A stretch of DNA of 64,000 bases from the NCBI GenBank assembly GCA_965113315.1, contig OZ220368.1. The stretch is one strand, 5' to 3'. A program made the position numbers and the translations under genes. This DNA is from Podarcis vaucheri (lineage: Eukaryota). This document shows, one piece after another, positions 60 to 38,800 of the stretch. A model generated the notes under the pieces. That model made no database searches. It was not told the origin of the DNA and worked only from the letters and a program-made list of their open reading frames with translations. Numbering within the stretch: position 1 is the stretch's first letter; each line of letters starts with the position of its first letter.

Positions 60-2200
60 CTGGTGAGTTTGAGAGAGAGGAGAGCAGACAAAGATCACTG
101 ATCAGGCCTCTTCCTTGCTTAATTCTGAGTTGTCCCTTGGTACAATAGCCCCAAGCTGCCCACCTGCAATTTTCCTCATGAGCACCCAGGGAATTAACAG
201 ACATCGTGAAAACAAACCTCCTCTCCACAGCAATGGAACATTCAGAACCACATCAGCTAGAAAGTGGCCTCCCTCAGTGCCAGAAAGGAATGGTCCAGCT
301 GAGAACAAGTTGCCAGCCTCAGACACACGAAGAGCCAAATTATAGGCTTTGGAGATGCAGCCAATTGAGCATCAGGCCTGGCGGGTAGTGACTAAGTGGT
401 TTATAATACCTATTATGCCGTTATAAACACATCACCCTAGGGGGTTATATGTCAAGGAACACCCACTGGGCATTATGTTCCACACTGAACAGCAGACTAA
501 CTCATGGCTGTCCTTGAAGCTCTAGCATAAGCCCTGAATACAGCAGGATTCACATGGGGCTTCTAACATGCAAAGACTTCCAAGTCATACAAGGGACTGG
601 CAAGTTACAACCAAAAAAGCAATACAAAATTGGCTGGCTCTGTTCCAATACATGCTATGCTTATATCTTTTTTTAAATGCCTGCCAGAAGACGTATGTTC
701 AGGCAGGACCATGTTCTCTGTTCTAGTGGAGGCTTCCTGTTGCCTTGCTCAAGGTAGAGGCGTACACTGGCCTCACTTTTAGCCCCTGCGGAGATGCCTG
801 TTGACCAAATTCTGCCAGTCTGAAAGCGGAGATCTTAAATAGCCTCTTCTCTGAAACACAGAGAAAACGTGCCCATAGCAGCTGCTTTTGTGGATGCTCA
901 GCAGGAAACACCTGCCTGGCTTAATTTGAGCCACATTTTGTCTCTGGAACCTGGTTCAGTGGCAGGGCTAAGTCCTAGAACATGCAGAATAGTAAAAAAT
1001 AATATTCTAGAGCCCATTTTCACATTACTGAGAAATAACTACATGTTCCCCAAGTTCTAAGATTAGAACTAAATTTCTGACACTTCTTGGGGAAACAAAA
1101 CAATAAATGTTGAATTCCAGGGGGCAGCAAAAACAAGGGAGGTATTTGCGGTGCCTTAAAGACTAATAAATTCACTGTGGCATAGCTTTTGTGAACTACA
1201 GCCCATTAGATGCATGATGTGTTACTCTGAATTACAGGTATATGTATATATACACATGCCTGGGGACATGGAGGGGGCTGTAACCAATGAAGTCACAGGG
1301 AAATGAAATGCAGAATAATGCAGTGATAAATGAAACAAGACTGATAAAGTGCTAAATGACAAAGTAATCTGTGGCTCTGCAATCGTTCTTTCAGCAACAG
1401 CCATTTATGATATTGTGGCTTCATTCCTCTAGTTTAAGAACACGACGACTGAGTTGAGTGCCAAGCTGGAGCTCACAACCTGGCACAGGTTTCAGAAAGA
1501 ACTGGCAGAGAACTTTGTGAGGGCAGCAGATCTTATGCAGAGGGCAGCTGCAGTTGCACCACAAAATAAAACCAGTTGCTTGGAGAGTTTGCTCTGCTAG
1601 CCAAAGTGCTCTTGTGCACATTCACTCTTGTACATGCAGTACCCAACCTTGTGGCACAAGGGCACCTTCTCCGCCTGCTCTGCGGACTCTATTCTCCTGC
1701 CTGCATGTTTGCTATGTCCGCCACACAAGTGCTCAGACCAGAAGAGTAATGAAGCATTTGACCAGCTCTAATGAGCCATTACAAGTAAATGAGGCTGAAA
1801 GTGAGAGACCCAGCATGGGACGGAGCAGAAGGGCTTGAGTATCTTCATTATGGGTGGACATTATTTACACATTTGCAGAAGCAATGGCACTATCCACCAT
1901 TTCCCCTCCCTTATTCATTCTGGCTTGGAACAATGGATAATCCTAAAGATTACAGGGGTGTGGAAAGTGAAGAAGCACAGAGAGTGGGGCAGATAATCTA
2001 TTTTCTTCCTATGGACTGCAAGGCACCCGGCAAGAGAGGCATGGAGAAGGGGAAGGAGATTCTGAGTTGTTTTATACATCTGATTTTATTAGCTTAAGCT
2101 TTGCAGAGCAAAGTTCCACTGTGACAAAGCTTCCCTAATGCCATCTCTGGAATGGCTGTCTTAGGCAGCACACAGTCCCTTCGCTTCTCGTGGTCCTTAC

Positions 2201-2413
2201 CGTATCCCCATCCTCCAGTGAAGCCAGCACAAAACAACGGTAGCTCAAGTCTTCTGAAAGGGGCTTATTGTAAAAGCCTTGATAGCTCTTCTGGTCCCCC
2301 AAGACAAAGGTCTCTGGCAGATCATCCATTTGGGCAGCAATATAAGGCTTGAGCCGCTCTGCTTGACGTCGCTGGCGCCTGCTTGGGTCCCCTTGGTTCA
2401 TGGCCTCAAGTAG
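2201..2413 (-). CDS. PTPRF: PTPRF exon containing the furin cleavage site (LLEAMNQGDPSRRQRRQAERLKPY...LEDGDT)
   Basis: 213 nt, phase 0-0; ccag|CTACTT ... GATACG|gtaagg; overlaps ORF 2135..2401. Confidence 0.96.
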
Positions 2414-4234
2414 CTGGGTGGCAAAAGGAAGCTAGTGTGAGAGAGAGCAATGCTATTTACCAAGGTAACTCTACATTTCCATGAGGAAAACCTGTAAGCC
2501 AGGTGACAAAAAACACCAGGGAGGTCCAGGTATTCATTACTCTAGTGCATTCCCGAAGGCTTTCTCTAGAACTCAATGAATGTACATCTACTTCCTTAAC
2601 AGAACAGTTAATTAAGTTGCTGGGGGTAAAACTGGAACCAAGTGTTGTCCTGGGTTTATGGTGGATGACTGTGAAAACAGGAAGCAGGACACGATGGACC
2701 CCTGGTCTGACCCAGCAGGCCTCTGATCACATTCTTATGCATGTTTTGTTTGTATTCATCATAACCTACACTGGGCACAGTTTTGTGAAAAATAGTGTAC
2801 CATTTTTATAAAGTTTATACCCCTCAACATCTCAAGGGAAATCATTTTAAAATACGTGTTTCTCTTTGATGGTAGAGCAGCAGGAGCAGCAGAGAACAGG
2901 CCACACAGTCCACATATGCATCTTTAGATGCTCAGCAATTTGAACTTTTGGAGATAGGCAAAAATTCCACAGGCTTTGACACATATTTCTGCCGCTCTGC
3001 AAACATACTTTGTAGCTTACACTAAAACGGACAAAATCTGTACGCAGAGCTCACCACCCCCACCACATCCTGCTGGGCTGCAGCAAGACTTTGTATAAAT
3101 CACACACAGTGCTAACATGGAATGTTCAGAGAGAGGAAAAAATGGCAAATTTCATAGTCATCCACAAACTCAAGAAAAAAGGACATAAACACACCAAAAT
3201 TCAATTACATTGCTCAGAAAAGCTCTCAGATGTTTAAAGATGTTTTTCTAATGAATAAAAATGAATGCTAGGCTCTGAACAGAAATTCTAATTTAAAATG
3301 AAGGAGGAGGCATGAAATACATTTCACACAAAAATGTGTTAGGGCAGAGATGAAGCATTAGAGCAATGGTGGTGCCAGGAAGAAAACAGAGACCACACAG
3401 AACCATGCCATTATTTCAGGGAAGGAGGGTGCTGGCTTGTGACCTTAACAAAATGGCATCCCTGCCCTCCAACCACAGCTTCTCTGCATCCTAACTAATG
3501 TGTGCAACACAAAGATGTGTGTGTGCACACAGTCTTATCCAAGCTTCAGTTTTTACCAGTGGAAACTGATCTATTGGGGCACTGCTCCCCTTGGTAAGCC
3601 CCCACTTGCCTGGCTTCTTATTTACATCCAGTGTAGGGGGTGGCACTGACTGCCAGTTTTCTCTTTTTAAGTCTCAGTGTTTCCCTTGCAAAACTCAGCA
3701 GGGAGAATTAAGTGACTCTGCCTGTCACTGGCTCTGACTCCAAGTACAGTTTGGGCTCCCTGCCTTCTGCCTTACCAATCCCAATGGGGACCTCTGCTTC
3801 CTACATCTTGTTTTGCATATAAATTATACAACAGAACCTGAGGGCAGAAGGAGGCATGGTGTGATCCATACATGCAACAAGTCCATGGGCAATCACACTT
3901 CAGTGACCTCTTTCACTGGACCAATAAGCTTCACAGGCAATTTTGAGAGCTGGCTAAAGATGAATATGGCTATCATGGGTATTTGAGGAACTTGATGACT
4001 TCAGGATGGCAGAAGATGGCACCTCCAAATTAAGCTATCAAATGTGGGAATTATCCCACATAGGCAAAGTTTCCGAAACCCCAGGTCCTTTGCCATTATC
4101 TCCAGTATGACAGGATGGTTAACGCTGCTCATATACTCTCCCAAATTATTTCATATGTGTGGGCTAGTTTCTTGAACATCTGTTTCCCTTACCCCCTTTA
4201 AAACAAGTGGAAACAAGTTTTGGCCTTCTCCTAC

Positions 4235-7955: not shown

Positions 7956-8209
7956 CAATCTTCAAAAGGTAGCAGTTATGAGGCACTGTTTCTTCACAGA
8001 AGCTGCCTGTTCAGTTTGCACCAAAGCAACAATTCTTATCTGGAAACAGAAAATGGGGTATGTGTTTGAAAAAACAAATGCAGTCATGCAACCTCTATGC
8101 CCCCCCCATCCAAAAAATTATAAGCTCAGGAAGGTAAGACTGACCAGGTCATCTCTGACCTGTTTTCTGCCATAGAGGTTCATTAACTGATCACAGGGGA
8201 GGCGCTTAC

Positions 8210-8788
8210 CTTGTTCCATCGGCATCGTCCTAGACTGAATGCTGGGGCTGAGAGGGCCAGCTCCCTTGTTAGTGTGGGCTCTAACTTTGATGTCATAGGT
8301 TGTGTCAGGTTTGAGGTTGGTCAGAGTGATGCTCGTTTCCCTCGTAACATTGGTCAGGTTCTGCTGGCTGTTAATGTCTCTGTACACAACTGTGTAGTTG
8401 GTCATTTTCCCATTCCTCTCTGCCAGAAGTGGAGGCTCCCAAGTCACTTTAGTGGTGGAGGTGGTCAGCCCCACCACGTGCAGGTTCTGGGGGAAACCGC
8501 TTGGCGCCTCCTCTGCGGTAGTGATTTCTTTTTCAAACTCCTCCCCAAGACCAACCCTATTCTTGGCAGCCAGCTTGAAGATGTAGGTGGCACCCTTGTA
8601 AAGGTCAGTCACGGTGAAGTGATCCACGTTCTTCTCAAAATTCATAATCCTCATCTTCTCCTCCTCAGCATGTTTGAACTGCAGCTGGTAGCCCAGCAGC
8701 TCCCCAACCATCTCTTTAGGTGGGTGCCAATTGATCAGAGCTGTATTCATGGCTGTGGTGCTGATCATCATGGTAGGCTTGCCTGGGA
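8210..8788 (-). CDS. PTPRF: PTPRF exon, FNIII-6 and FNIII-7 (VPGKPTMMISTTAMN...SIQSRTMPMEQ)
   Basis: 579 nt, phase 1-1; ccacag|TCCCAG ... GAACAAG|gtaagc; inside ORF 8118..8852. Confidence 0.97.
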
Positions 8789-10764
8789 CTGTGGAACAAA
8801 AACAGGGTGATATGCTGTAAGTGGGAGGGAGACAGAGTTCTGGCCTTTTCACTGCTGGAGTTGCTCACTCGGGAAATTTATCTACCTGCTAAGGAATATC
8901 AGCTAGCACAGCACTCCCTATCAATTTGGCGACAGATTACAGATGAAAGATCAATATGTTTGAATGCTTCCCCACATTAAAATTAGCTGCACACAAAAAA
9001 GCAGCATATCTGGGATAAGACTTTTGCTTTGCATGCTTTCCACAGGCAGGGAGTTTACAGGGGCAATGTCCAAAAAGGCAAACCACCTGCAATTTGAAGT
9101 GGTTCAGTCCAGAAACAACTGCACTGTATTTATGAACATATCAGTGTTTACTCTTCCAGGTCCTCCAAATTCCACAATTAAACAACAGCAACAAAACAAA
9201 ATCCAAATTTTATAATTGAAAAAAACTAATTTCTACATGGCTACATTTCACAAATATCCTTAACCTATATGTTTGTCTGTAAAATGTGCCTAACTTGATC
9301 ATAAGATCTGATTTCTTTTGGGGAGGGGAGTTGAGAACCCTATGGTGGAAGCTATAGGATCTTAAAGGAATAGGGATGAATAAGATTATCACAAATGCCA
9401 CACTTTGTGCAAGCTTCTGAAGGAATTTTGTCAGCTGCTATATTTTGTGAAAACCTTTGTGCCTGTAGTTTGCAAACACTGATAATGCAGGATGTCAGTA
9501 GGTGATGGACTGAAATTCAGATGGAACCAAACCCTGGGGCAAATTATTTAAACAGCTAATCCCTAACTTCTATAGTGTAAATTATTCCAAATGTAACTAT
9601 TTCCAAAATTGCAATGAAAAATAACACTGTGATGGATACTGTCTTCAAAACTTCCTTGTATCTGACTCTTAAATCTCATCATACTTCCACAACCACTCCT
9701 TGAATCTTGCCATTTGCAGAAGCAAGCCTAGAGAAAGTAGATTTGGGACAGTATGATAAAGAAAGTGAAAGGTAATGCCATAAGATAAGAAATCAGGGCT
9801 TTAATATAAGATGTTGCAGAGAAGCCCAGACTCAAAACTGGAATCTCCGCTAGTTTGATGCTGGCAATTTTCATAGCAATCTTTATAATTTCACCACCTG
9901 TGCGAGCTGTTGAGAGCATAGCATGCTGTTTGCAATCAAAATGTGCTGTGTTTGAGCTGATGAACTGGTTCCTGCTAGGAATGTTGATGTGATGGCTGAG
10001 CAGCAACAGGATTCCAAATCTCATATATGTAGCACAAATTAAGGGCTGCTCCCTTCAAAGCTTAACACCTGCTGTATAAAATGGATGGTTTCATATCTCC
10101 GTTCCACCCACAACAGAGACACATCCTTCCCCCAAATCAGGAGAGATTGACGTGTAAATCCATCAACAACAAAACTATTCAGTATCAGCACAGTGCCAAG
10201 ATAACCATTATCCTGTGCCAGACTGTGGCACTCAGAGCAAATTTACAATAGCATAGTGGTATTCTGGATTTGGGGTGAGCTGATTTGACTAAGCTGTGAT
10301 GAAGCTGCCATGTGAATGTCATGGTATTTTGCCAATTCAAGGCAGAGGCATTTCCCAGCAACTATTAGCCATGGTAACTATGAGCAGAAGCGGTACAGTT
10401 CCAAATGTCAGATACTTGGGATGAACAGGAGATGGTCATTGTTCTCCTGCTCTGCTTGTGGCTCCCCAGAGACATGTAACTGACTGCTGTTAACATGGCA
10501 TACCAGAATGCCTGCAAATTATCTCCATTGTAGTAAAATTGTAATGTGTGAAGCGGTTCTTAAAGAGAGGAAGTTTCCATTCTTCTACTTGCTTCTCCAT
10601 CACCTGCAGTTCAGTCTGCAAAACAAGGGGTTTGAGCGTACAGGTGCTTTTTTCACCTTCCTAACACTTCTTAAGATTAAAATTTCTGTCATCTTTGATT
10701 CTGGAGCTCAAAATATTAGAGTAGATTTGCCTATCAAAGATGTGTTTTAGTACTATTGGCTCAC

Positions 10765-18339: not shown

Positions 18340-18716
18340 TGGCTCATCTAGACCAGCACCCTGTTCTTATAGTGGCCAACCAGATGCCTGTGGGAAGCCT
18401 CCAAGCAGGACCTGAGTGCAAGAGCACTCTGCCCTCCTGTGATTCCCAGCAACTGGTATTCAGAGGCATCCTGCCTCTGACAGTGGAGGTAGAACACAGT
18501 CCTCATGGCTAGTAGCCATTGACAGCATTGTCCTCCATGAATTTGTCTAAACCTCTTTTAAAGCCACACAAGTTGGTGGCTGCCACTGCTGTCTGTGGGA
18601 GCAAGTTCCATAGTTCAACTATGTGCTGCATGAAGAAGTACTTTCTTTTCTGTCCTGAATCTTCATATGTTCAGCTTCATGGCATGTCCACAAGTTCTAG
18701 CATTATGAGAGAGGAG
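18340..18716 (-). mobile_element. Older CR1-type LINE 3' region, left part (interrupted by the young CR1)
   Basis: Aligns by eye with the copy at 62700-62948 plus 63313-63450 (e.g. gtggccaa.cagatgcct, tgaagaagtactttctt, tgtcctgaatc). Confidence 0.7.
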
Positions 18717-19733
18717 GAAAACCGAACCCAAAGGGTGCTCATCAATGGTTCCTCTTCATCCTGGAGAAGAGTGACTAGTGGGGTGCCACAGGGTTCTGTC
18801 TTGGGCCCGGTCTTATTCAACATCTTTATCAACGACTTGGATGATGGACTGAAGGGCATCCTGATCAAATTTGCAGATGACACCAAACTGGGAGGGGTGG
18901 CTAACACCCCAGAGGACAGGATCACACTTCAAAACGACCTTGACAGATTAGAGAACTGGGCAAAAACAAACAAGATGAATTTTAACAGGGAGAAATGTAA
19001 AGTATTGCACTTGGGCAAAAAAAATGAGAGGCACAAATACAAGATGGGTGATACCTGGCTTGAGAGCAGTACATGTGAAAAGGATCTAGGAGTCTTGGTT
19101 GACCACAAACTTGACATGAGCCAACAGTGTGACGCGGCAGCTAAAAAAGCCAATGCAATTCTGGGCTGCATCAATAGGAGTATAGCATCTAGATCAAGGG
19201 AAGTAATAGTGCCACTGTATTCTGCTCTGGTCAGACCTCATCTGGAGTACTGTGTCCAGTTCTGGGCACCACAGTTCAAGAAGGACACTGACAAACTGGA
19301 ACGTGTCCAGAGGAGGGCAACCAAAATGGTCAAAGGCCTGGAAACGATGCCTTATGAGGAACGGCTAAGGGAGCTGGGCATGTTTAGCCTGGAGAAGAGG
19401 AGGTTAAGGGGTGATGTTCAAATATATAAAAGGATGTCACATAGAGGAGGGAGAAAGGTTGTTTTCTGCTGCTCCAGAGAAGCGGACACGGAGCAATGGA
19501 TCCAAACTACAAGAAAGAAGATTCCACCTAAACATTAGGAAGAACTTCCTGACAGTAAGAGCTGTTCGACAGTGGAATTTGCTGCCAAGGAGTGTGGTGG
19601 AGTCTCCTTCTTTGGAGGTCTTTAAGCAGAGGCTTGACATCCATATGTCAGGAGTGCTCTGATGGTGTTTCCTGCTTGGCAGGGGGTTGGACTCGATGGC
19701 CCTTGTGGTCTCTTCCAACTCTATGATTCTATG
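18717..19733 (+). mobile_element. Young 5'-truncated CR1 LINE (RT C-terminal part of ORF2 plus 3' UTR)
   Basis: Motifs [31 protein letters not shown] and [15 protein letters not shown]; one frameshift near 19410; ORF2 stop at 19660-19662; ends in CTATGATTCTATG, the CR1 octamer tail. Confidence 0.97.
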
Positions 19734-19900: not shown

Positions 19901-21349
19901 TTCCTGTGAATACTAAATATGGAGCTAGATAAACTAAAGACATAGTAACACCCAACTGAATTTTGTACCAAATTATTGTGCTTTGATAACCTAGATTATT
20001 CTTGTGGTTTAAATTAATTGTGAGATGCTAAACACAATAGGGAGGAGGGTGTAATCTGACTTCAAAACAGTAACTCTAAGTACTGGAAGACAAATCCACC
20101 CTTTTCTAACTGATGGGTCAATTTCAGATGCTTCCCACACATTCATATTTCTCCTTACCTACATATACGAGGGCTAGGAAATCTTGTTCATTTTTGTTCT
20201 CTGAACTGATTATTGCTTCCTGAAAGCTCCCATATGTAATTTTAATACATAATCTTAAGTATGTATGGGATTGTAAGAAATGGCAGACATTAGCTTCATT
20301 TTCTTATAGTCATCTGAATAAACTGACCAAGTTTATTTGTTCCATCTATATAGTCTTTGTCTCTATGCCTCTATGTGTGAACATTTCCATAAGGAGGGAA
20401 GCCTGTGGCTGCAAATCAGACAGTCTGAGAAGAGACTCTACCGTTAGATGCCTTATTTGATACCACACAGTATCAAAGTACAAGGTGTGAAAACAGCCCA
20501 GATCCAATCCAAGGATGAACTGAGCCAGGATTGGCCTAAGGCATGAGCTCTACAAAATACTGTGAAGTATCTCAGCCGGAAACTGGATGATCACATAAGA
20601 AATAAATGAAGCATGGCATCAGGAAGTAAATCAGAATGAAGCAATGCCAGGGCTAGAGGCAAGCAGGGAAGCAGGAATGGTCAAATCCAACTTGGTCTGC
20701 ATCTGAGCAATGAGTTACTCAGATTGTGTAGCTAAGCTAAGAGACAGCAGGTTTATTTGGCTTTTGTGTTAGGTAATTCCAGGAAGTAGGAAAGTGTGTA
20801 CATGGTAAGGCAGCCCTCCTGGTGCCAACTAATATGATTGATGGATGGATGGGCAGTTGAAGGGGGAAGGGGAGGAGTGGGAAAGGGCATTCTTTGCCCA
20901 AAACAGCCTGGCAAGCAAACCTCCCAGGTGGGCTGAAGATTCCCTGCCTCTGTCTCCAAGGTCCAAGTGGAAGACAGTGGTGGAGGGGAATGAGGTGGCA
21001 GTCTAACCTGCCAGGCTCAGAAATATTACATAATTGGTTCTTAACTCTGTTGGGACTCGCTCCCAGTCACATGGCTGAGGAATATCAGAGTCAACAAAAT
21101 GTGCATGATAAAAGCACTTAGCACTGTAGCCATAGGTAGGGAACAAAAGAGGTACCGGGGGGGGGGACACAAGGAAATGTTTCCCCATCATAGGGCCTCA
21201 GTTCCCACCTTCAACAAGGTCAACTGAACCTATGGAACCCCTTTCTATATAAATTTACCCTGGAAGGGAAGTAGGATAGGAAGAATCTAGGAACTCAGCA
21301 AGATATGGCAGCAGACTACTATAATGCATTTCTACCTTTCAAAGGAGAA

Positions 21350-21493
21350 GGGACGCGGGTGGCACTGTGGGTAAAACCTCAGCGCCTAGGACTTGCCGAT
21401 CGTATGGTCGGCGGTTCGAATCCCCGTGGCGGGGTGCACTCCCGTTGCTCGGTCCCAGCGCCTGCCAACCTAGCAGTTCGAAAGCACCCTCGG
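21350..21493 (+). mobile_element. Sauria (Squam1-type) SINE, 5' part
   Basis: GGGACGCGGGTGGCACTGTGG head, B-box GGTTCGAATCC and CCTGCCAACCTAGCAGTTCGAAAGCA core. TSD TACCTTTCAAAGGA at 21333-21346 and 23567-23580. Confidence 0.9.
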
Positions 21494-22290
21494 TACTTCC
21501 GGGTTAGCGCAATCAGCAAATGGCGGATTCCCTCTGAGCTTCGGAGGGAATCGGCTTGGTGGAAGAGGGGTCCTGCCGCGGCGATGACGCGGGGACCCTC
21601 AGAAACCACAGGCGCTGAAGCCTGTGGACTTGGTGACTCGGCGGGCACCATTTGCGCCCCCCCTTTTTAAAGGCTTCGGAGCGGGTGGCAGAGAGCGGCG
21701 TGGTGCTGTGAGTAGACTGCTTCTTCCACGGAGTGAAGCCGCAAGCCATGGCTGGAGAGCGCTGACTTCTTTCCTTGACCATTTGGACTTCAAAAAGTAA
21801 CAACCCGTGAGTAATACGGAAATTGGAATTAAAAATTTCTTTTAATTGAATTCGGTACGACCGGGGGAGGTGCCAAAAGGAAGTCCGCCTCCCCCCCTCA
21901 CAGACAATTTAAAGCAAGAATTAGATAACTAATGTTGAGAGACTGTCTTCCTCTCTTCGAGACAGAAATTTTTAATTTCACGACTTGGACATACAAGTTT
22001 ATTACTGGAGGATTAGAACTGAACGTTAGAGTTGAAGTGTAACCCTCCCCCCCGGATCCGGGAGCGATCCGCGAGAGAGCCTGTAGAAGATATTTACAGA
22101 GTTTGACAGCTGTCAAATGAGCTGTCAAAGTCAGGAAATTCTGTTTTTTGCTACTTGTGCCGGTTATTTTTGTTACATTGGACTTTAAGTGTTTGAAAAT
22201 AGAGAGGAAATAAGAACAAAATAACCTGATTGTTGGAGAAAGAACACTTAGTAACCAGAATCCCTCTAGAGGGGGTTCTGAGATATTACA

Positions 22291-22896
22291 ATGGTTGCAG
22301 ATGGAAAAATACAGGCAGAGTTGGACAGAGTGTTTGATTTCCTGGGAAAGCTGCAAGAGCAGAGTGATGTTATGGTTACAAATCTTGCAACCTTGATCCT
22401 TAAAATAAACAAATCTGCTGAAGCGGTTAAGGACTTGACTCAAGAAAAATCTGCAGCTGGAAAGGAAGATACATGTGCCGTTTTGGAGGAATGCGAAGGA
22501 GGAGCTGAAACGCTGCAAGTGAAAAAGGACAACCAGAGGCCTGTTAAGTTGGAATATAAGGAAAGCAAGGTTTGGAAGACGAAAATTTGGTTTGAAATGG
22601 AGAATGAAGATTGGGGATTTTTCCCTATGGGGAGTCCGGAAGACCCATGGATTACAAATTTGATCAAGGCGAAAACTGGAATGTTTGGGACATTTGGGAC
22701 ACTTGGACTTAAAAAGAGTAAGAAGCAGGACCTAGACTCTTTCTTTGAATATGGAGGCCTGGTTAGAAAAAACATAGACCCTACTGGGTCAAAGATGCTC
22801 CGAGATCTGATGTTCAACATAAAGGACTGTCAACAAAACCAGCTGAAAGGGACTGAGAGAGATTTAAGGGCCTCGGACGTGATAGATCCAGGCTGA
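22291..22896 (+). CDS. Intact 201-aa ORF of the inserted element; N-terminal coiled-coil-like region, function unknown
   Basis: Strong Kozak context (acaATGG), uninterrupted frame, heptad-like hydrophobic spacing over roughly residues 7-50. Confidence 0.55.
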   Translation: MVADGKIQAELDRVFDFLGKLQEQSDVMVTNLATLILKINKSAEAVKDLTQEKSAAGKEDTCAVLEECEGGAETLQVKKDNQRPVKLEYKESKVWKTKIWFEMENEDWGFFPMGSPEDPWITNLIKAKTGMFGTFGTLGLKKSKKQDLDSFFEYGGLVRKNIDPTGSKMLRDLMFNIKDCQQNQLKGTERDLRASDVIDPG

Positions 22897-23312
22897 GAAC
22901 TGACAGACTGAAGGATAATTTCTGGGGATCGAAACGGGGGGGGGGGGAAAGCTTTGGAATCCAAAGGGGTACAATTATATGTTTTCATTTGTTAGGTTGT
23001 TCTGTAATTATTTTAATAATTGGGAATCTCGTGAAAGGGAACTTGGGTCGACCTTAGAAAAAGGGGTTAATGTCGAGTATTAAAATGAGGTTTAGAAGTT
23101 TAAAATTGGCTAACTAAGACGGATAAAGTAAAATATTAATAAAAAGAACTTGCTGAGCTAAATTTTGGAATTGGGATGCAAGAAGGGAGGTGGGGGAAGT
23201 CCGGGAAAGTGGTTATGAAAATAAGGTTTTAAAATTATACGTGTTATTTGTGTGTAGTGTCGAAGTGTATGTTTATGTTTTTGTGACTGTCTAAAAAAAA
23301 AGAGAAAATCCT

Positions 23313-23317
<5 letters not shown>

Positions 23318-23364
<47 letters not shown>
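23318..23364. repeat. (TA)n microsatellite forming the tail of the 1.87-kb element
   Basis: Direct inspection; abuts the right TSD. Confidence 0.95.
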
Positions 23365-23368
<4 letters not shown>

Positions 23369-23573
23369 CCTCGGGTGCAAGTAGATAAATAGCGGGAAGG
23401 TAAATGGCGTTTCCGTGTGCGGCTCTGGCTCACCAGAGCAGCTTCGTCACGCTGGCCACGTGACCCAGAAGTGTCTGCGGACAGCGCTGGCTCCTGGCCT
23501 CTAGAGTGAGATGAGCGCACAACCCTAGAGTCTGTCAAGACTGGCCCATACGGGCAGGGGTACCTTTACCTTT
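23365..23573 (+). mobile_element. Sauria SINE, 3' part
   Basis: GTGCAAGTAGATAAATAG...GGGAAGGTAAATGGCGTTTCCG...GAGATGAGCGC, ending in the ACCTTT-repeat tail. Confidence 0.9.
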
Positions 23574-24567
23574 CAAAGGACAGATGTGAAGGGACATTAG
23601 CTAGCCTCTGATCTCTGCCATATGGGGAAACACTAATGCAGAGACATGCCCATGAAGGACAGGAGACCATGGAACATGCACTTGCAAACTTAGTGTTCTA
23701 AAAGAACAGTGTTGAAATCTGTTCTTAATGCCCAGGAAGGTTCATTTTCTCTCTAACAGAGGACACCCCCCCCCCAGTTCAAAAAGCAAATGCAATCAAG
23801 TTATTTCATTTAGAGGAGATTAACAGCATAGTTTACTTGGGACCAAATCTTTAACCCCAAAGACCAAAAGAACACGGCAGCAAGTTGATGATTAATTTCA
23901 CCAGCCTAAAGGTCAACTTTGAGGAAATTGGAAGAGGCATTGGGCTGCTTCACAAATACAAAAATTCGACAAAGTCTGTAGGAATCATGATGGTCTAAGC
24001 TGAGCAGTGAAGTCTGGAGCTAGCAAGTCTTGGTCTCACTTTATTCCCCCCCCCACTCATTGTTGGGGTGGGTTTGGGTTGTATGTGGGGTGGGTAGTGG
24101 TTGTATGTTTGTTTGGGGGGGTTGGCTGTGCTTTACTCCCTGCTGAGAAAGATGCAAATGAATCAAGTGTTGTATTAATGAGATTTATTAATTAGTCAAC
24201 ATAGCTCTCCAGTAATCCTATTGGGTGCCATTCAAATAGTCTAGCTCACAAATGATCACACCTAGACTGCAACTGTAGAAGTCCCAGAAACGTCTGCCTT
24301 GTCCTGCTCCCTGATACTCCCAGTTCATTCCATCTCAACCCTTTCCACATCGTTCTCTCCCAAAATTTGTTTTAGGCTCTCAACTACAGTAAGGAAGTCT
24401 GTAACAAAGAAAATGCATGTTCATTGCCATAATATAGCTCTCTTTCTCTCTAACCATATAAAGTGAAAAAGCCCATGACAAAGCAAATACAGACCCTTCT
24501 TCAAAATATATTATTTCTCTGTCTGTCCATGCATGCATCCATCCATCCCACTCATACCAGGATATAC

Positions 24568-33298: not shown

Positions 33299-33686
33299 CT
33301 GGAGACCAATACAACAAGAGTCAGTTGTGGGAGGGGACTCCAGAGCAGCTTTAGAAAATTTCAAGGTGCAAGCCCTATCATCAACGCACTTCAACAATAG
33401 CATTGTCATAAACACAATCTTAACACATTCTCCTAAGCTCCAGGTTCAAACAATGACAACTATGTTCTTTCTCAAACTAGTGATTAACCAAAGTATCCAC
33501 AACTATGCTTAAGTCAACTGTTAACTATGCTGGCAACAGAGTGCTGCTGGAACACCTATTTGAAAAGGACAAATTGCCTACCAAATCCCTAAAGTCTCTG
33601 GATCACACCTCAACCTTAGCTCAAAATATTAGCTCTTGGAAACAGTAGGACAGAGAAGGAATAGAGCTCACACAAAACATACATAC

Positions 33687-34268
33687 CACCCTGTTGGGCC
33701 TTTATCTGGATGGCATCAGAAGGGGGTCCATCTCCTACTGAGGTGAAAGCCAAGACACGAATACTATAGGTGGCCCCATTTATCAAACTTCCTACAGTGG
33801 TGAGATGATGATCATCAGTGTTGTGTTTCTGCCACTTGCTGAGTGGTAGGTGGGGGTCAATGGTGTAGTACACTCGATAGCCACGGATCATCCCATTGGG
33901 CTCTTCAGGTTGTTCCCATTGGACCAGCATGGTGCTGGAACTCAGCATCCGTGCCTTCACTTTGAGGGGTGGGCTTGATGGAGCTTGCTCTCCTGTCCGT
34001 GCATCCACCAACTCACTAGGGGGACTCCTGCCAATGTTATTTACAGCAATAATGCGGAACTCATATTCTGAGAAGGGGCTTAGGCCACCAATGCTATAGC
34101 GGGTGGTTGCCACACCATCTACTTCTCGGAAAGTGCCCTCTAATGACTTGGACTTATATTGGATGACATAGTAGGAGATAGGGTCAGCATTTCCTGAGTC
34201 CCAGGTGAGAGTCACACTGGTAGCTGTCGTCTCCGTTACTAATGGCTCCATTGGAGGTTTTGGAAGAG
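33687..34268 (-). CDS. PTPRF: PTPRF exon, FNIII-1 and FNIII-2 ([18 protein letters not shown]...IQIKAQQG)
   Basis: 582 nt, phase 1-1; tttcag|CTCTTC ... CAGGGTG|gtatgt; inside ORF 33616..34287. Confidence 0.97.
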
Positions 34269-35552
34269 CTGAAAGCAAAAAGCACAATGTCAGTAATTTG
34301 ATTAGTGCAAATGCTGTAATGTGCAGAGCTATAAAGGAGGCTTAGATGCTTGCTAACGTTTTCCTTTAAAGGCAGAAATCATTTCATAGTCAAGAACGTA
34401 CATTTTTATATTACACATTACCATATATTGCTTGAAGTGCTTCTTAATGGAAGAGTAAACACAGCAATCATGTTATTAGATGTGCTCAAAGCACTTGCTG
34501 GCAGCTGGCTAAATAAAGGTAATTTAAACAAGGAACCAAGTCAGGTTTTCTAAAGCAGAAAGGGTTATTCAGCTGAGGTACGCTTTAGGAAGCCAGGTTC
34601 ATGGCCTTTTCGGAAAGTATACCGGGGCAAAAGTAGTTCCATGTCTACTGTTGCTGCAAGAGCAAGAATATGTGGACTGCAGGGACTTGTGGCAAGCATA
34701 TTTTTGTGGTGGGATGTTAAGGAAGCCAATCCTGTTACGAAAGTTCCGAGCATTAACAAGAAAGCAGAACTACTCTAGCACAACTGATCACATCAGCCAT
34801 TTATCCAAAAAAGATAAATTTGTGGTCAGTACTGCGTTCTACTATCTTGGGATCCTTCTATGTACTGGCTAGGCACAAGGAAAACATTTATGATCATGAA
34901 GAAAAGACTGAGAGACTCCCTGACTCCCATAATGATCACCCTCTGGAGCTGTATTAATGTAAATACTGAAATCACAGTAGGTTATAGGATGTTTAGTAAG
35001 GTAACAGAACTGAAAGACAGGTGCTTCCACAAAGCTTTTTCAAGTGACCTGACAGAGATGTGCTGTCCTGGATGCCATTTCACACCATCCAGATACATGC
35101 ACAAAACAAACAAATATTAGCTCTTGGGCAGGGCTCTTGAATGACAGCGGAGAGGCCTTATTATTTCTCCCAGAGACTTGCTCTATAATTCTGATGTTTG
35201 GCCATTCCATTTATGCACTGTAAGTAAACCTCTATTTTACAAGAAAACAAATGAGAAAACTCTGGGAGATACATGTTGGGTAACAAAGATCGGGAGGCGG
35301 GGGGATGCACACGCGATGTGTCTTAAAAGTCTACACAAGTACAGCAGACTCCCTGCTACAGATGTTTGCCGTGAACATGCAAGAAGCTAGAAAGACCTGT
35401 GCAACAATGGCGACAGGGCTAATGGTGAGGCTCCACAGCATCTTTGTACTCAGGTTCCCCATTCACACTAATAATGACTGAGTCACAAGTGCACCCCATT
35501 CTGCTACCTGGTACCATGCAGAGGTATAGGATACCATGGAGCAGCTTCTTAC

Positions 35553-35822
35553 CTTTGACAGTGATCTGAGCTGTTGCATGGATTACCCCCAGTGAGGACA
35601 TGGCTTCGCAGGTGTAGTTGGCCGACTGCGTGATGTTGGTCAACTCCAAAACATTCCTGCCCATTGGCATGTCATCTTCTTTCGTCAGCTCCACGTCTCC
35701 GACAATCCACTTCACGTAGGGCATGGGGGACCCCACTGCTACACATGTGAGATTCACGCTCCCTCCAGGCATCACCTCATGGTTACTTGGAGGGATTGAA
35801 AATCGAGGGGACACTCGCCGCA
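35553..35822 (-). CDS. PTPRF: PTPRF exon, Ig3 ([12 protein letters not shown]...ATAQITVK)
   Basis: 270 nt, phase 1-1; tttcag|TGCGGC ... GTCAAAG|gtaaga; both Ig cysteines present. Confidence 0.97.
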
Positions 35823-38800
35823 CTGAAACAAGGAATAGACAACTAGTAGGGTCACAGCCTAGACAATTGATATTCACTTGCTGCATACCCAAGGGGTGGG
35901 GGAAGGATCAACATTTCTCCTAAGTAGTAGCAAATCAATCCAGAAAAGAAGAAAAGAAAAAAAAGAATTCTGAACAACAGCTGTTCACTGCTCTGCCAAA
36001 TTTCATACCCAAGTTCTCCCTTTGACCCACTGGTGTTTTCAGCAGGAGCTCAACGATAGGACTGCCACCATTATTGTTCTCTCAGCTAAGTTACATTATG
36101 GACACTAAAATGTCTCTTTATTTCAAATCTACCCACTAATTAGAAAATAAGTTCACGCCCTGTCCATAGGGTGTGCAGAACCTCTGCAAGGTGGAATAAG
36201 CTACTAAACTGGTTGGTTCCACAGCAAAGCAACCTGCAGGACAAACCTATCTTGCAGGGGCAGCTACAGGGTTTTATTTTTAAATTACTGCATGCATTAC
36301 TGCTAGCTAAAAGAGTGTTCCTGTGCAGGATTCAGCAGTGAGCCTGGGGCACCGCACAGCCGGATCAGAACACCTTGTTGGGTAGGAGCTTCATCTTAAT
36401 AGACAGGAGATCAGATCTGAGCTGACAGCAGAGGACCTGGGTGACAGGATCCTCTCTCCCATTGGGAATGTGTTCCAGGAGAAAGAACACTCCTTATTTC
36501 ATCACACAGCATCTATTCATATAAAAGTCTCACTTGGGTTATTTTGTAGACAAACCATTAGATCGGCTAAAGTGCCCCAGCTGTTTGCTGTACACACATC
36601 AGTCAGGGAAATGACACTGAGAGATGAGGACCCTTCTTTAGGGCCAGTATTATGGGCCAATTTAAGGAGGGATACAGGAACACAACTGAACATAGTAAAT
36701 CTTTGTCTCCTCTGGGCAAACTCATTTCAAATACATACAATAAAATAAAAAATTAAAAATGTGGGAGGGAGGGTGCAATGTGTTTCTTCTGGGAAGCCTG
36801 CTTTTCTGTAATGGAGATGTCACTACACATTTAATATCACAGCCTCTCCAGTCCACAGAGTCAGGGCTGGCAGAATAGTGAAGAGCTGCAATGCACAGGG
36901 ATAGGGTTAGCTGGAAAGCAGTGGGGTGGACTATTTCTTAGCAAGATGGGAGAGACCTGCTCAGGGGCTAAAGCCCACTGGGACTGCCTCATGCTGGGCT
37001 TCCTCCTGCGTCATCTCCAACACCACAAAATCTCGTTAGAATAGGGGCAGCTGCTGACAGACAGGCTGACAAGACTCGGCTCAGCCTGACACTTCCCCTA
37101 ATCAAATTTCGCTTGAGCTCTCTTTGATGATTCATTCCCAAACCAGCAGACTCACAGAAATAGACTGAACACAGAAGCCCCCACATTAGAATGTACAACA
37201 GAGTGAGGGTTTGGGGATAAATTAGACAATGCTGTCAACAGTGACAAAGCAGAGCTCATCAGCTCCTCACCAGCTTTTTTAAAGGGGCCCTCCCATAATG
37301 ATAATGTGCATGTTATCAAATGTCTCAATCTATAATCTAGTGGGTTGTTCCTTTTAATCAATTGTTCAATCTCAGGTCAATAATTGTGTGCATGGTCACC
37401 AGTGAAAGGCTTGCTCCCTGCCTGACAGGGGAGTGCACCCCCAAACAAGACAGAAATTAAAGCAAATCAGCGCTCTAACAGAGTTATGAGAATACCCTGG
37501 TATTTAATGGACATGGCAATGGATCAACATGATGGGGTGGTTGTCCAACGCAGCCTGGTTCTGATCGGCAAGAGGCAGGACTCGTTCTCCCCCCCACAAT
37601 GAACATGGTATTGAGCCAGTACATGAAGAGGTTTGTTCATTTGTTGTGTTTTATTCCAGGGACCAACCAACTTCCCACCCGCTCACCAACCAAACTGGTC
37701 TCAAAGAAAAGCAAGCTTGAGTAGTAACACAACAGGCTCGTGCACGGCAATAATTAATTGACTTGACATGCGCCAGACAGGAAAGAGGCCAGGTATGGGA
37801 ATGAAGCTGCTACATAAAATCTTGACAAAAAACAAGGGTGGGAAGGTTGAAATGCACAGATAGGCAAGCACGAGGCACAGGAATGAGACTGGAAGGAATT
37901 CATGCAGAAGGGCTGAAAGAATTCAGTAGCATGCAGAAACCACCTCTGCCATCCACTCCAGTGAGAACCAAGCAAGATAGCTCCTACAACTACCTCCGAT
38001 TACCTAAGTCACCTTCAAATGCATGCATGAGCAGTGGTTAGAATTAGAGTGAATCTCCACCAGAACAGCATTCCCTGACATATCTCTCAGACATCAGTCC
38101 CCAACTGACTCCTTTGTGGCCGTAAAAAGACCTGTCAAGACCATGCTTGGGAAGAAAGAACACGGCTTGTGAATCTGCCGATAAGCGCTTTAGTTCATTC
38201 AGCAAAGAGCTATCGAGAAAACCTCTCGCCCTTTTTGAAAGCTGCTGTTTACTATTCTAGCGGCAGGGGAAGAGAAAAGGTTACTTGACAATGTATCAGA
38301 GAGGGGTCTCTTCTAGCCTAGCTACAGGATGAATGGCAATGAAAATCTCTCCCCCCCTCCAATCCCCACACAAAACCAAGCCGATTTAAAGAAAGGCTGT
38401 AGGCAAGCCCCTTCCCCAGGGGTAGGTTACTCAAAAAGAGGATCGGAAATCAGAGCACTTCTGATTCCACAAGACGACTCAGCCAAATGTCACTCTTATG
38501 ACTGAGCAGAGATATGCATCTCCCTAAGGCCAACACAGACACTAAGCTGATGAACCTTTTCTTTCCTACTGGTACGTTGATGCAGCGACAGTTCGAGATT
38601 GGTTACAGGGCATAAAGGTGCAGAAGTGAGGCTGCTGCCTTAGTTCTTCACTCAGTTTCCACTGTTTCATTTCCAAAAAAATGCTTGCCTTCTTCCTGCC
38701 CTAGGTTGCCCTATTAATGACCTAGCCTCAACAGATTGTCCTCCAGCCACAATACGTTGCCTAAGTACTGCACCGTGCAAGCAGGATAGATTGTTTCTGT

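Follow-up and report, generated by a model that had tools for sequence, protein, structure and literature searches.

A probable family of lacertid retroposons that lacks a reverse transcriptase and encodes a protein of its own

We analyzed a 64,000-nucleotide stretch of the genome of Podarcis vaucheri (contig OZ220368.1 of assembly GCA_965113315.1; hereafter the window). In this window, a tRNA-derived short interspersed element (SINE) of the Sauria type is split by an insert of 1871 bp. Minus-strand exons for two pairs of fibronectin type III (FN3) domains and an I-set immunoglobulin (Ig) domain (8118-8852, 33616-34287, and 35419-35892) flank the SINE and its insert on both sides. The nest is thus intronic, within a gene for an Ig/FN3 receptor, and the inserted element is antisense to that gene. 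An earlier inspection of the letters of the window (the sequence-only reading) had picked out the insert as a HAL1-like retroelement with a single open reading frame (ORF) and no reverse transcriptase. Our analysis makes it probable that the insert is a full-length and apparently young copy of an abundant lacertid family of retroposons without long terminal repeats (non-LTR), which have neither reverse transcriptase nor endonuclease and encode a protein of their own. Four parts of this proposal were seen directly: a retro-insertion signature, the lack of any enzyme domain, the repetition of the sequence as a family, and a protein-coding gene under selection. The coordinates of all features are collected in Table 1.

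The boundaries of the insert are exact. The sequence GCACCCTCGG stands at both ends of the insert as a perfect 10-bp target site duplication, and the second duplicate is directly followed by GTGCAAGTAGATAAATAG. In copies of the SINE elsewhere, GCACCCTCGG joins GTGCAAGTAGATAAATAG without interruption, as found in two DNA runs (45 contigs with an agreement of 0.97 and 17 contigs with an agreement of 1.0). The flanks in the window thus rejoin precisely into one SINE, confirming the split and the perfect duplication claimed by the sequence-only reading. Joints that skip the insert derive from other intact SINE copies and are therefore uninformative on the occupancy of the present locus. The host SINE carries a tRNA-type B box (GGTTCGAATCC), has a flanking repeat of its own (CCTTTCAAAGGA), and shows a CpG observed/expected ratio (o/e) of 0.83 once rejoined. 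Its 3′ part ends in (ACCTTT)2, a motif that is absent from the tail of the insert; an (ACCTTT)n tail has been described for Sauria SINEs (PMC13295347).

The insert consists of a leader, one ORF, a 3′ untranslated region (UTR), and a tail. It was claimed to start with a CpG-rich leader of about 800 nt. The leader is indeed 797 nt long and its CpG o/e reaches 0.85-0.93 over the first 600 nt (21494-22093), but the last 200 nt have an o/e of only 0.16; the values are 0.69 across the insert and 0.19 for the whole window. Only five ATGs occur in the leader, and they open short upstream ORFs of 5-36 codons. The element opens with T-ACTTCCGG, which is followed by the YY1-type core AAATGGCGG. L1 elements have a YY1 site near their 5′ end, and the position of AAATGGCGG resembles that arrangement. 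The palindrome TGACAGCTGTCA further downstream, which we take to be a paired TGACAG-type homeodomain half-site, falls in a local peak of family depth (22044-22147) amid a less conserved part of the leader. Two GTGAGT motifs that resemble splice donors lie on the sense strand of the CpG-rich part (21708 and 21807), and no RNA joints were listed from either.

The single 201-aa sense ORF and its strong Kozak context, both noted from the letters, were confirmed (A at −3, G at +4), as was the A-rich/(TA)n tail. The 3′ UTR contains AATAAA at 23138 (155 nt before the tail) and ATTAAA at 23079 (214 nt before the tail). We found neither direct nor inverted terminal repeats in the insert, whose TA run is its sole internal repeat, and no SINE, LTR, or variable-number tandem repeat (VNTR) module inside it. 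Rfam returned only TA-repeat artefacts for the region, and neither a second copy of the element nor an L1 similar to it was found within the 64-kb window. On the antisense strand, a stop-free stretch of 277 codons (21901-22731) extends 390 nt into the leader. We do not consider it a gene: its sole start is a TTG, it has no ATG start and no Pfam match, and it is probably a by-product of the composition of the sense frame.

Table 1. Features of the insert and of the SINE that it splits, in window coordinates
Feature	Position	Strand	Basis or remark
Host SINE, 5′ part	21349..21493	+	boundary 21349/21350, where thousands of reads and contigs have loose ends
Left target site duplication, GCACCCTCGG	21484..21493	.	
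Whole retroposon copy, without reverse transcriptase	21494..23364	+	1871 bp
5′ leader, 797 nt	21494..22290	+	CpG, depth, motif scan
ACTTCCGG, ETS-type motif at +2 of the element	21495..21502	+	motif scan; candidate part of an internal promoter
AAATGGCGG, YY1-type core at +25 to +33	21518..21526	+	sequence; putative function
Perfect 12-bp palindrome TGACAGCTGTCA, closely followed by a second AGCTGTCAAAG (region 22104-22130)	22104..22115	.	sequence
ORF, 201 aa (coordinates include the stop)	22291..22896	+	open reading frame
3′ UTR, 396 nt	22897..23292	+	depth similar to the ORF
Tail, A9GAGA4TCCTAATAA then (TA)24; (TA)24 at 23317-23364	23293..23364	+	
Right target site duplication, GCACCCTCGG	23365..23374	.	
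Host SINE, 3′ part, ending in (ACCTTT)2	23375..23573	+	family end at 23573

The insert carries no enzyme of its own. We scanned stop-free stretches of at least 54 aa in all six frames against Pfam and found no family, hence no reverse transcriptase or endonuclease domain. The same scan recovered RVT_1 at 3.4e-16 from a nearby fragment of a long interspersed element (LINE; 18519-19535), which served as the positive control. The earlier claim that such motifs are missing therefore stands.

To ask how often the insert recurs, we placed Logan contigs of two DNA runs (X1 and X3, which carry two species labels) on positions 20900-24000 at ≥82% identity. The unique flanks were identical to the window in one run and differed at 7 of 267 positions in the other. 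Summed contig depth was 35-100 over these flanks, versus 2.7e3-1.1e5 (X1) and 8.8e3-2.1e5 (X3) over the insert. The ratio of insert to flank, although summed depth is a rough guide to copy number only, ranged from ~60 to 4000 in the two species, and the insert is therefore not a single-copy sequence but part of a repeated family, as had been proposed. In addition, runs that stem from eight studies and bear eight species labels contain 10-45% of the 31-mers of the insert. With its high depth in two species, an exact duplication, and neither LTRs nor terminal inverted repeats, the insert has the properties of a non-LTR interspersed repeat.

The depth profile is uneven. In both DNA runs, the first ~340 nt of the leader are 5-10 times deeper than the rest (7e4-2e5 over 21524-21835 versus 1e4-4e4), whereas elements copied by a LINE would be expected to show an excess at the 3′ end. 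Other retroposon families, or the 5′ UTR of a LINE, may have this abundant 5′ module in common with the element, or it may simply be the best-conserved part of it. Further peaks coincide with 22044-22147 in the leader and exactly with the bins that code for the N- and C-termini of the protein.

High depth also bears on whether the insert could be a processed pseudogene, that is, a retrocopy of a cellular mRNA, perhaps from a multi-copy or highly expressed gene. The CpG-rich beginning looks like a transcription start, and its ETS and YY1 motifs are of a type common in housekeeping genes; the only ORF has a strong start context; and the duplication and tail are those of any LINE-mediated retrocopy. 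However, in two species the depth exceeds the single-copy level by a factor of hundreds to thousands, and the ORF is still intact in the retro-inserted copy of the window. Moreover, searches of 5.8 billion and 1.84 billion sequences returned no annotated lizard host protein, except one partial “hypothetical” model, and the deeply divergent protein lineages described below are all of the same compact size. Given the high depth and the lack of an annotated parent protein, we consider the mRNA retrocopy, which the sequence-only reading had named as its own possible undoing, very improbable.

There is also evidence of transcription. Two RNA runs of a third species yielded reads over the leader and the ORF; in one of them, a sample comprising 12% of the run reached a depth of 73x. 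The reads showed a strand bias of 3- to 30-fold, which argues against DNA contamination.

The copy in the window looks young, as had been suggested, because its duplication is exact, its ORF is intact, and its CpGs are retained; the insert is probably a young copy within a young SINE. The copy is not identical to the majority of its family. At least three CpGs kept by the family majority are lost in it (21535, 21557, and 21585), and some of its changes are private or confined to a subfamily, for example V2 in place of the A of the family.

We then characterized the protein. A word-based search returned two relatives only (73% and 69% identity, 201-202 aa), and a second word search added four more. 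A profile built from three sequences, run without length limit against all 1.84 billion representatives, gave eleven true clusters of 129-215 aa and none longer; two extra matches were repeat proteins aligned in short stretches and were discounted. The orphan family comprises about 15 distinct proteins of 171-215 aa. All relatives lie on Logan contigs of 0.9-1.9 kb, except one on a chromosome-scale record of Podarcis lilfordi. Only this relative bears a name: it is a partial model of 129 aa, deposited for Podarcis lilfordi as a “hypothetical predicted protein”, and its presence places the family in lacertid lizards. Searches of the literature and of protein names found no described reptile family of this kind, and no relative turned up when viral contigs and JGI metagenome contigs were scanned with the C-terminal motif.

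Fifteen distinct sequences align from a common methionine (MAxxGK...) to a common end (...GTERDLRASDVxxPG followed by the stop), at pairwise identities down to 20-30%. The ORF thus has the same start and end in very divergent relatives, which supports the sequence-only reading. In the window, the protein consists of a heptad helix (residues 7-49), a variable middle that is acidic and rich in Trp and Phe, and a basic C-terminal motif ending in RASDVIDPG. Mean column conservation follows this division: it is 0.44 for residues 1-50, 0.24 for residues 51-160, and 0.50 for residues 161-201 (p = 9e-11), and the middle region is rich in insertions and deletions across the family. In four relatives (P0008, P0011, P0023, and P0024) the MAAEGK start is preceded by an N-terminal extension of 12 residues (MAIPLGxTxDIT or METPLEGTxDIA). 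This subfamily therefore uses an in-frame ATG upstream of the shared start, or at least keeps it open.

A random substitution in the ORF of the window would create a stop in about 5% of cases. Since divergent frames are nonetheless all open with the same boundaries, their openness is not due to chance and indicates long-term purifying selection. Comparison of the sequences thus gives evidence that the protein was kept by selection in the lineages from which the copies descend. It was also conceivable that the ORF is dispensable for movement, the element being an SVA-like, long non-coding retroposon whose open frame is incidental or serves the host. No synonymous excess separates the window copy from the family majority, and most of the protein is predicted to be disordered, both of which would fit a dispensable ORF. 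Against it, relatives with only 20-30% identity retain the start, the stop, and both terminal motifs; neutral decay cannot produce such a pattern when ~5% of substitutions are stops, and the heptad pattern is conserved as well. We find this alternative scarcely credible.

The heptad positions (7, 11, 14, 18 ... 49) follow one another in unbroken 3-4 spacing and are hydrophobic in 74% of cases, versus 19% elsewhere (p = 2e-5). The C-terminal third is basic (isoelectric point 8.9). AlphaFold gave a mean predicted local distance difference test score (pLDDT) of 36 with three sequences and 49 with 20 sequences. With 20 sequences it was confident only for a helix at residues 3-55 (pLDDT 72-91 over residues 1-40); no folded domain follows the helix in the model, which is unreliable outside it, and most of the protein is predicted to be disordered. 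A Foldseek search of the PDB with the model gave no match. Pfam returned nothing above noise for the ORF of the window and 20 relatives, and sequence and profile searches of the PDB returned only chance coiled-coil matches with E values of 0.3 or worse. In the ESM Atlas the best score was 0.77, below the level of the shuffled control, and its faint gag-like neighbors were not counted as evidence.

Can the element be called HAL1-like? HAL1 is an L1 derivative that encodes ORF1p and arose several times in mammals by loss of ORF2 (PMC5753468). The architecture agrees: like HAL1, the lizard element is a non-autonomous non-LTR retroposon of ~2 kb with a leader, one ORF, a 3′ UTR, a tail, no ORF2, and presumed mobilization in trans (PMC5753468), and the endonuclease and reverse transcriptase that make up ORF2 are indeed absent from the insert. 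However, the ORF of HAL1 is L1 ORF1p, whereas the lizard protein has no Transposase_22 domain, no ORF1p match in the PDB, and no predicted fold of the RNA recognition motif (RRM) or of the ORF1p C-terminal domain (CTD). Transposase_22 was not matched in Pfam by the window protein at E up to 10 or by 20 members at E up to 1. No ORF1p chain was found in the PDB by sequence or profile, nor any ORF1p-like protein among the 1.84 billion representatives. Homology to L1 ORF1p was thus tested and not found, so that “HAL1-like” holds for the architecture only and the element fails on this defining feature of HAL1. The earlier remark that no RRM- or CTD-like sequence is visible agrees with Pfam, the PDB, the profile search, and AlphaFold alike.

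The protein nevertheless has traits of a type II L1 ORF1p, namely an N-terminal coiled coil (about six heptads) ahead of a C-terminal part that is more basic, and it is the first ORF after a long leader with a YY1-type site, as in L1. It differs in being ~130 residues shorter, in lacking an RRM and a CTD, both in its sequence and in the model, and in its acidic, indel-rich middle that is predicted to be disordered.

Several LINE clades have ORF1 proteins without recognizable domains. The element might be a true half-LINE, generated by internal deletion of a living or recently extinct lizard LINE; the coiled-coil protein would be an ordinary, fast-evolving ORF1, and the UTRs would be shared with the parent. 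A leader, a single coiled-coil ORF, a 3′ UTR, and an A-rich tail are what remains when ORF2 is removed, and the 5- to 10-fold higher abundance of the first 340 nt looks as if they were common to other families. Mammalian HAL1 elements originated in this way several times (PMC5753468). On the other hand, the profile search of the 1.84 billion representatives gave no longer protein and none with a further domain, the contigs that bear relatives are 0.9-1.9 kb long bar the Podarcis lilfordi record, none of the 20 members matches Transposase_22, and the 3′ end shows no excess of depth. Because these counterpoints are absences in databases poor in lizard repeats, they carry little weight. We consider an origin of this kind unlikely but worth keeping in view.

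Our preferred interpretation, an enzyme-less retroposon family with its own protein, has HAL1 and the Drosophila element HeT-A as its nearest functional analogues. HeT-A, found at Drosophila telomeres, is LINE-like, encodes a Gag/ORF1-type protein only, and borrows reverse transcriptase from another element; apart from short motifs, that protein changes rapidly in evolution. HeT-A is directed to chromosome ends, and zinc knuckles and a region like the major homology region (MHR) are found in its Gag, whereas the lizard element is dispersed (the window copy being intronic) and its protein has no recognizable domain. SVA, composite L1-dependent retroposons, and processed retrogenes are similar in that they combine an RNA polymerase II transcript and a borrowed LINE enzyme with a target duplication and an A-rich tail. 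Unlike them, the lizard element has no VNTR, SINE, or LTR module, and it has its own protein-coding gene, which is under selection.

Taken together, these results suggest the following life cycle. Transcription would start at the first base of the element, driven by the ETS-type (+2) and YY1-type (+25) motifs of the leader. The ~1.9-kb RNA would be translated into the protein of ~200 residues, whose N-terminal heptad helix may form oligomers and whose basic C-terminal motif may bind the RNA that encodes it, by analogy with LINE ORF1 proteins. The resulting particle would capture in trans the endonuclease/reverse transcriptase (the ORF2 protein) of an autonomous LINE. Finally, the RNA would be copied into a staggered chromosomal break by target-primed reverse transcription, generating the 10-bp duplication; of these steps, it is the insertion that left its signature in the window.

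As the partner LINE, L1 is the most likely candidate supplier of the enzyme, a preference based only on the A-rich tail and on the exclusion of Bov-B. The window copy has a 10-bp duplication and an A-rich tail, but this tail is mainly (TA)24 and the target is GAAA/GCAC rather than TT/AAAA; a single copy does not define a target preference. We rejected mobilization by Bov-B/RTE, since the tail and target of the insert differ from the (CAA)n/(ACCTTT)n tail and the Tn-TA signature (PMC13295347).

Several points weigh against the proposed interpretation as a whole. RNA binding, oligomerization, and trans-mobilization of the element are predicted functions, and L1 as the partner is a candidate only. 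In the one copy at hand, the bottom-strand nick deduced from the duplication would be GGGTGC/TTTCGA (target GAAA/GCAC), versus TTTT/AA (TT/AAAA) for the L1 consensus, and the tail, mostly (TA)24, would be unable to pair with that nick site. The last 30 nt before the tail contain no canonical poly(A) signal. Depth is not raised over the 3′ UTR, and therefore no abundant LINE shares the 3′ end of the element at ≥82% identity. The depth ratios on which family size rests are, as mentioned, approximate. The strand bias of the RNA reads is compatible with either direction of transcription relative to the ORF. Lastly, 20 listed differences between the ORF of the window and the family majority comprise 5 synonymous and 15 nonsynonymous changes, close to the 20% synonymous changes expected at random; selection is invisible at that level, and these differences give no signal either way.

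A bolder proposal can be built on the same data, and we put it forward as a possibility that we ourselves rather doubt. The lacertid family of “half” retroposons would be large and still active, and its coiled-coil protein, without detectable kinship to any LINE ORF1p, would have evolved independently to package RNA or to hijack an enzyme and would be under selection across subfamilies that are only 20-30% identical. With L1 copies that lack ORF1, the family could form a split two-component retrotransposition system in which separate elements provide the ORF1-like and the ORF2 function.

Very few elements are known that parasitize LINEs and code for a protein; the examples are mammalian HAL1 and HeT-A of flies. 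If true, a lizard family that is expressed, present in high copy number, and apparently young, with a protein unrelated by sequence to ORF1p, would make the question of ORF1 function testable: does oligomerization, binding of RNA in cis, or recruitment of the ORF2 protein suffice to win the reverse transcriptase of a LINE? Such elements are likely labeled “unknown” or mis-annotated as genes in lacertid annotations, the hypothetical protein of Podarcis lilfordi being one case, and intronic insertions of the family may serve as polymorphic markers.

The intron that houses the nest also contains, 2-3 kb upstream of the SINE, the plus-strand LINE fragment mentioned above (18519-19538). This fragment has no similarity to the insert; its open stretch of 339 aa matches RVT_1 at 3.4e-16 and shows motifs of the CR1/L2 style (FADDTKL).

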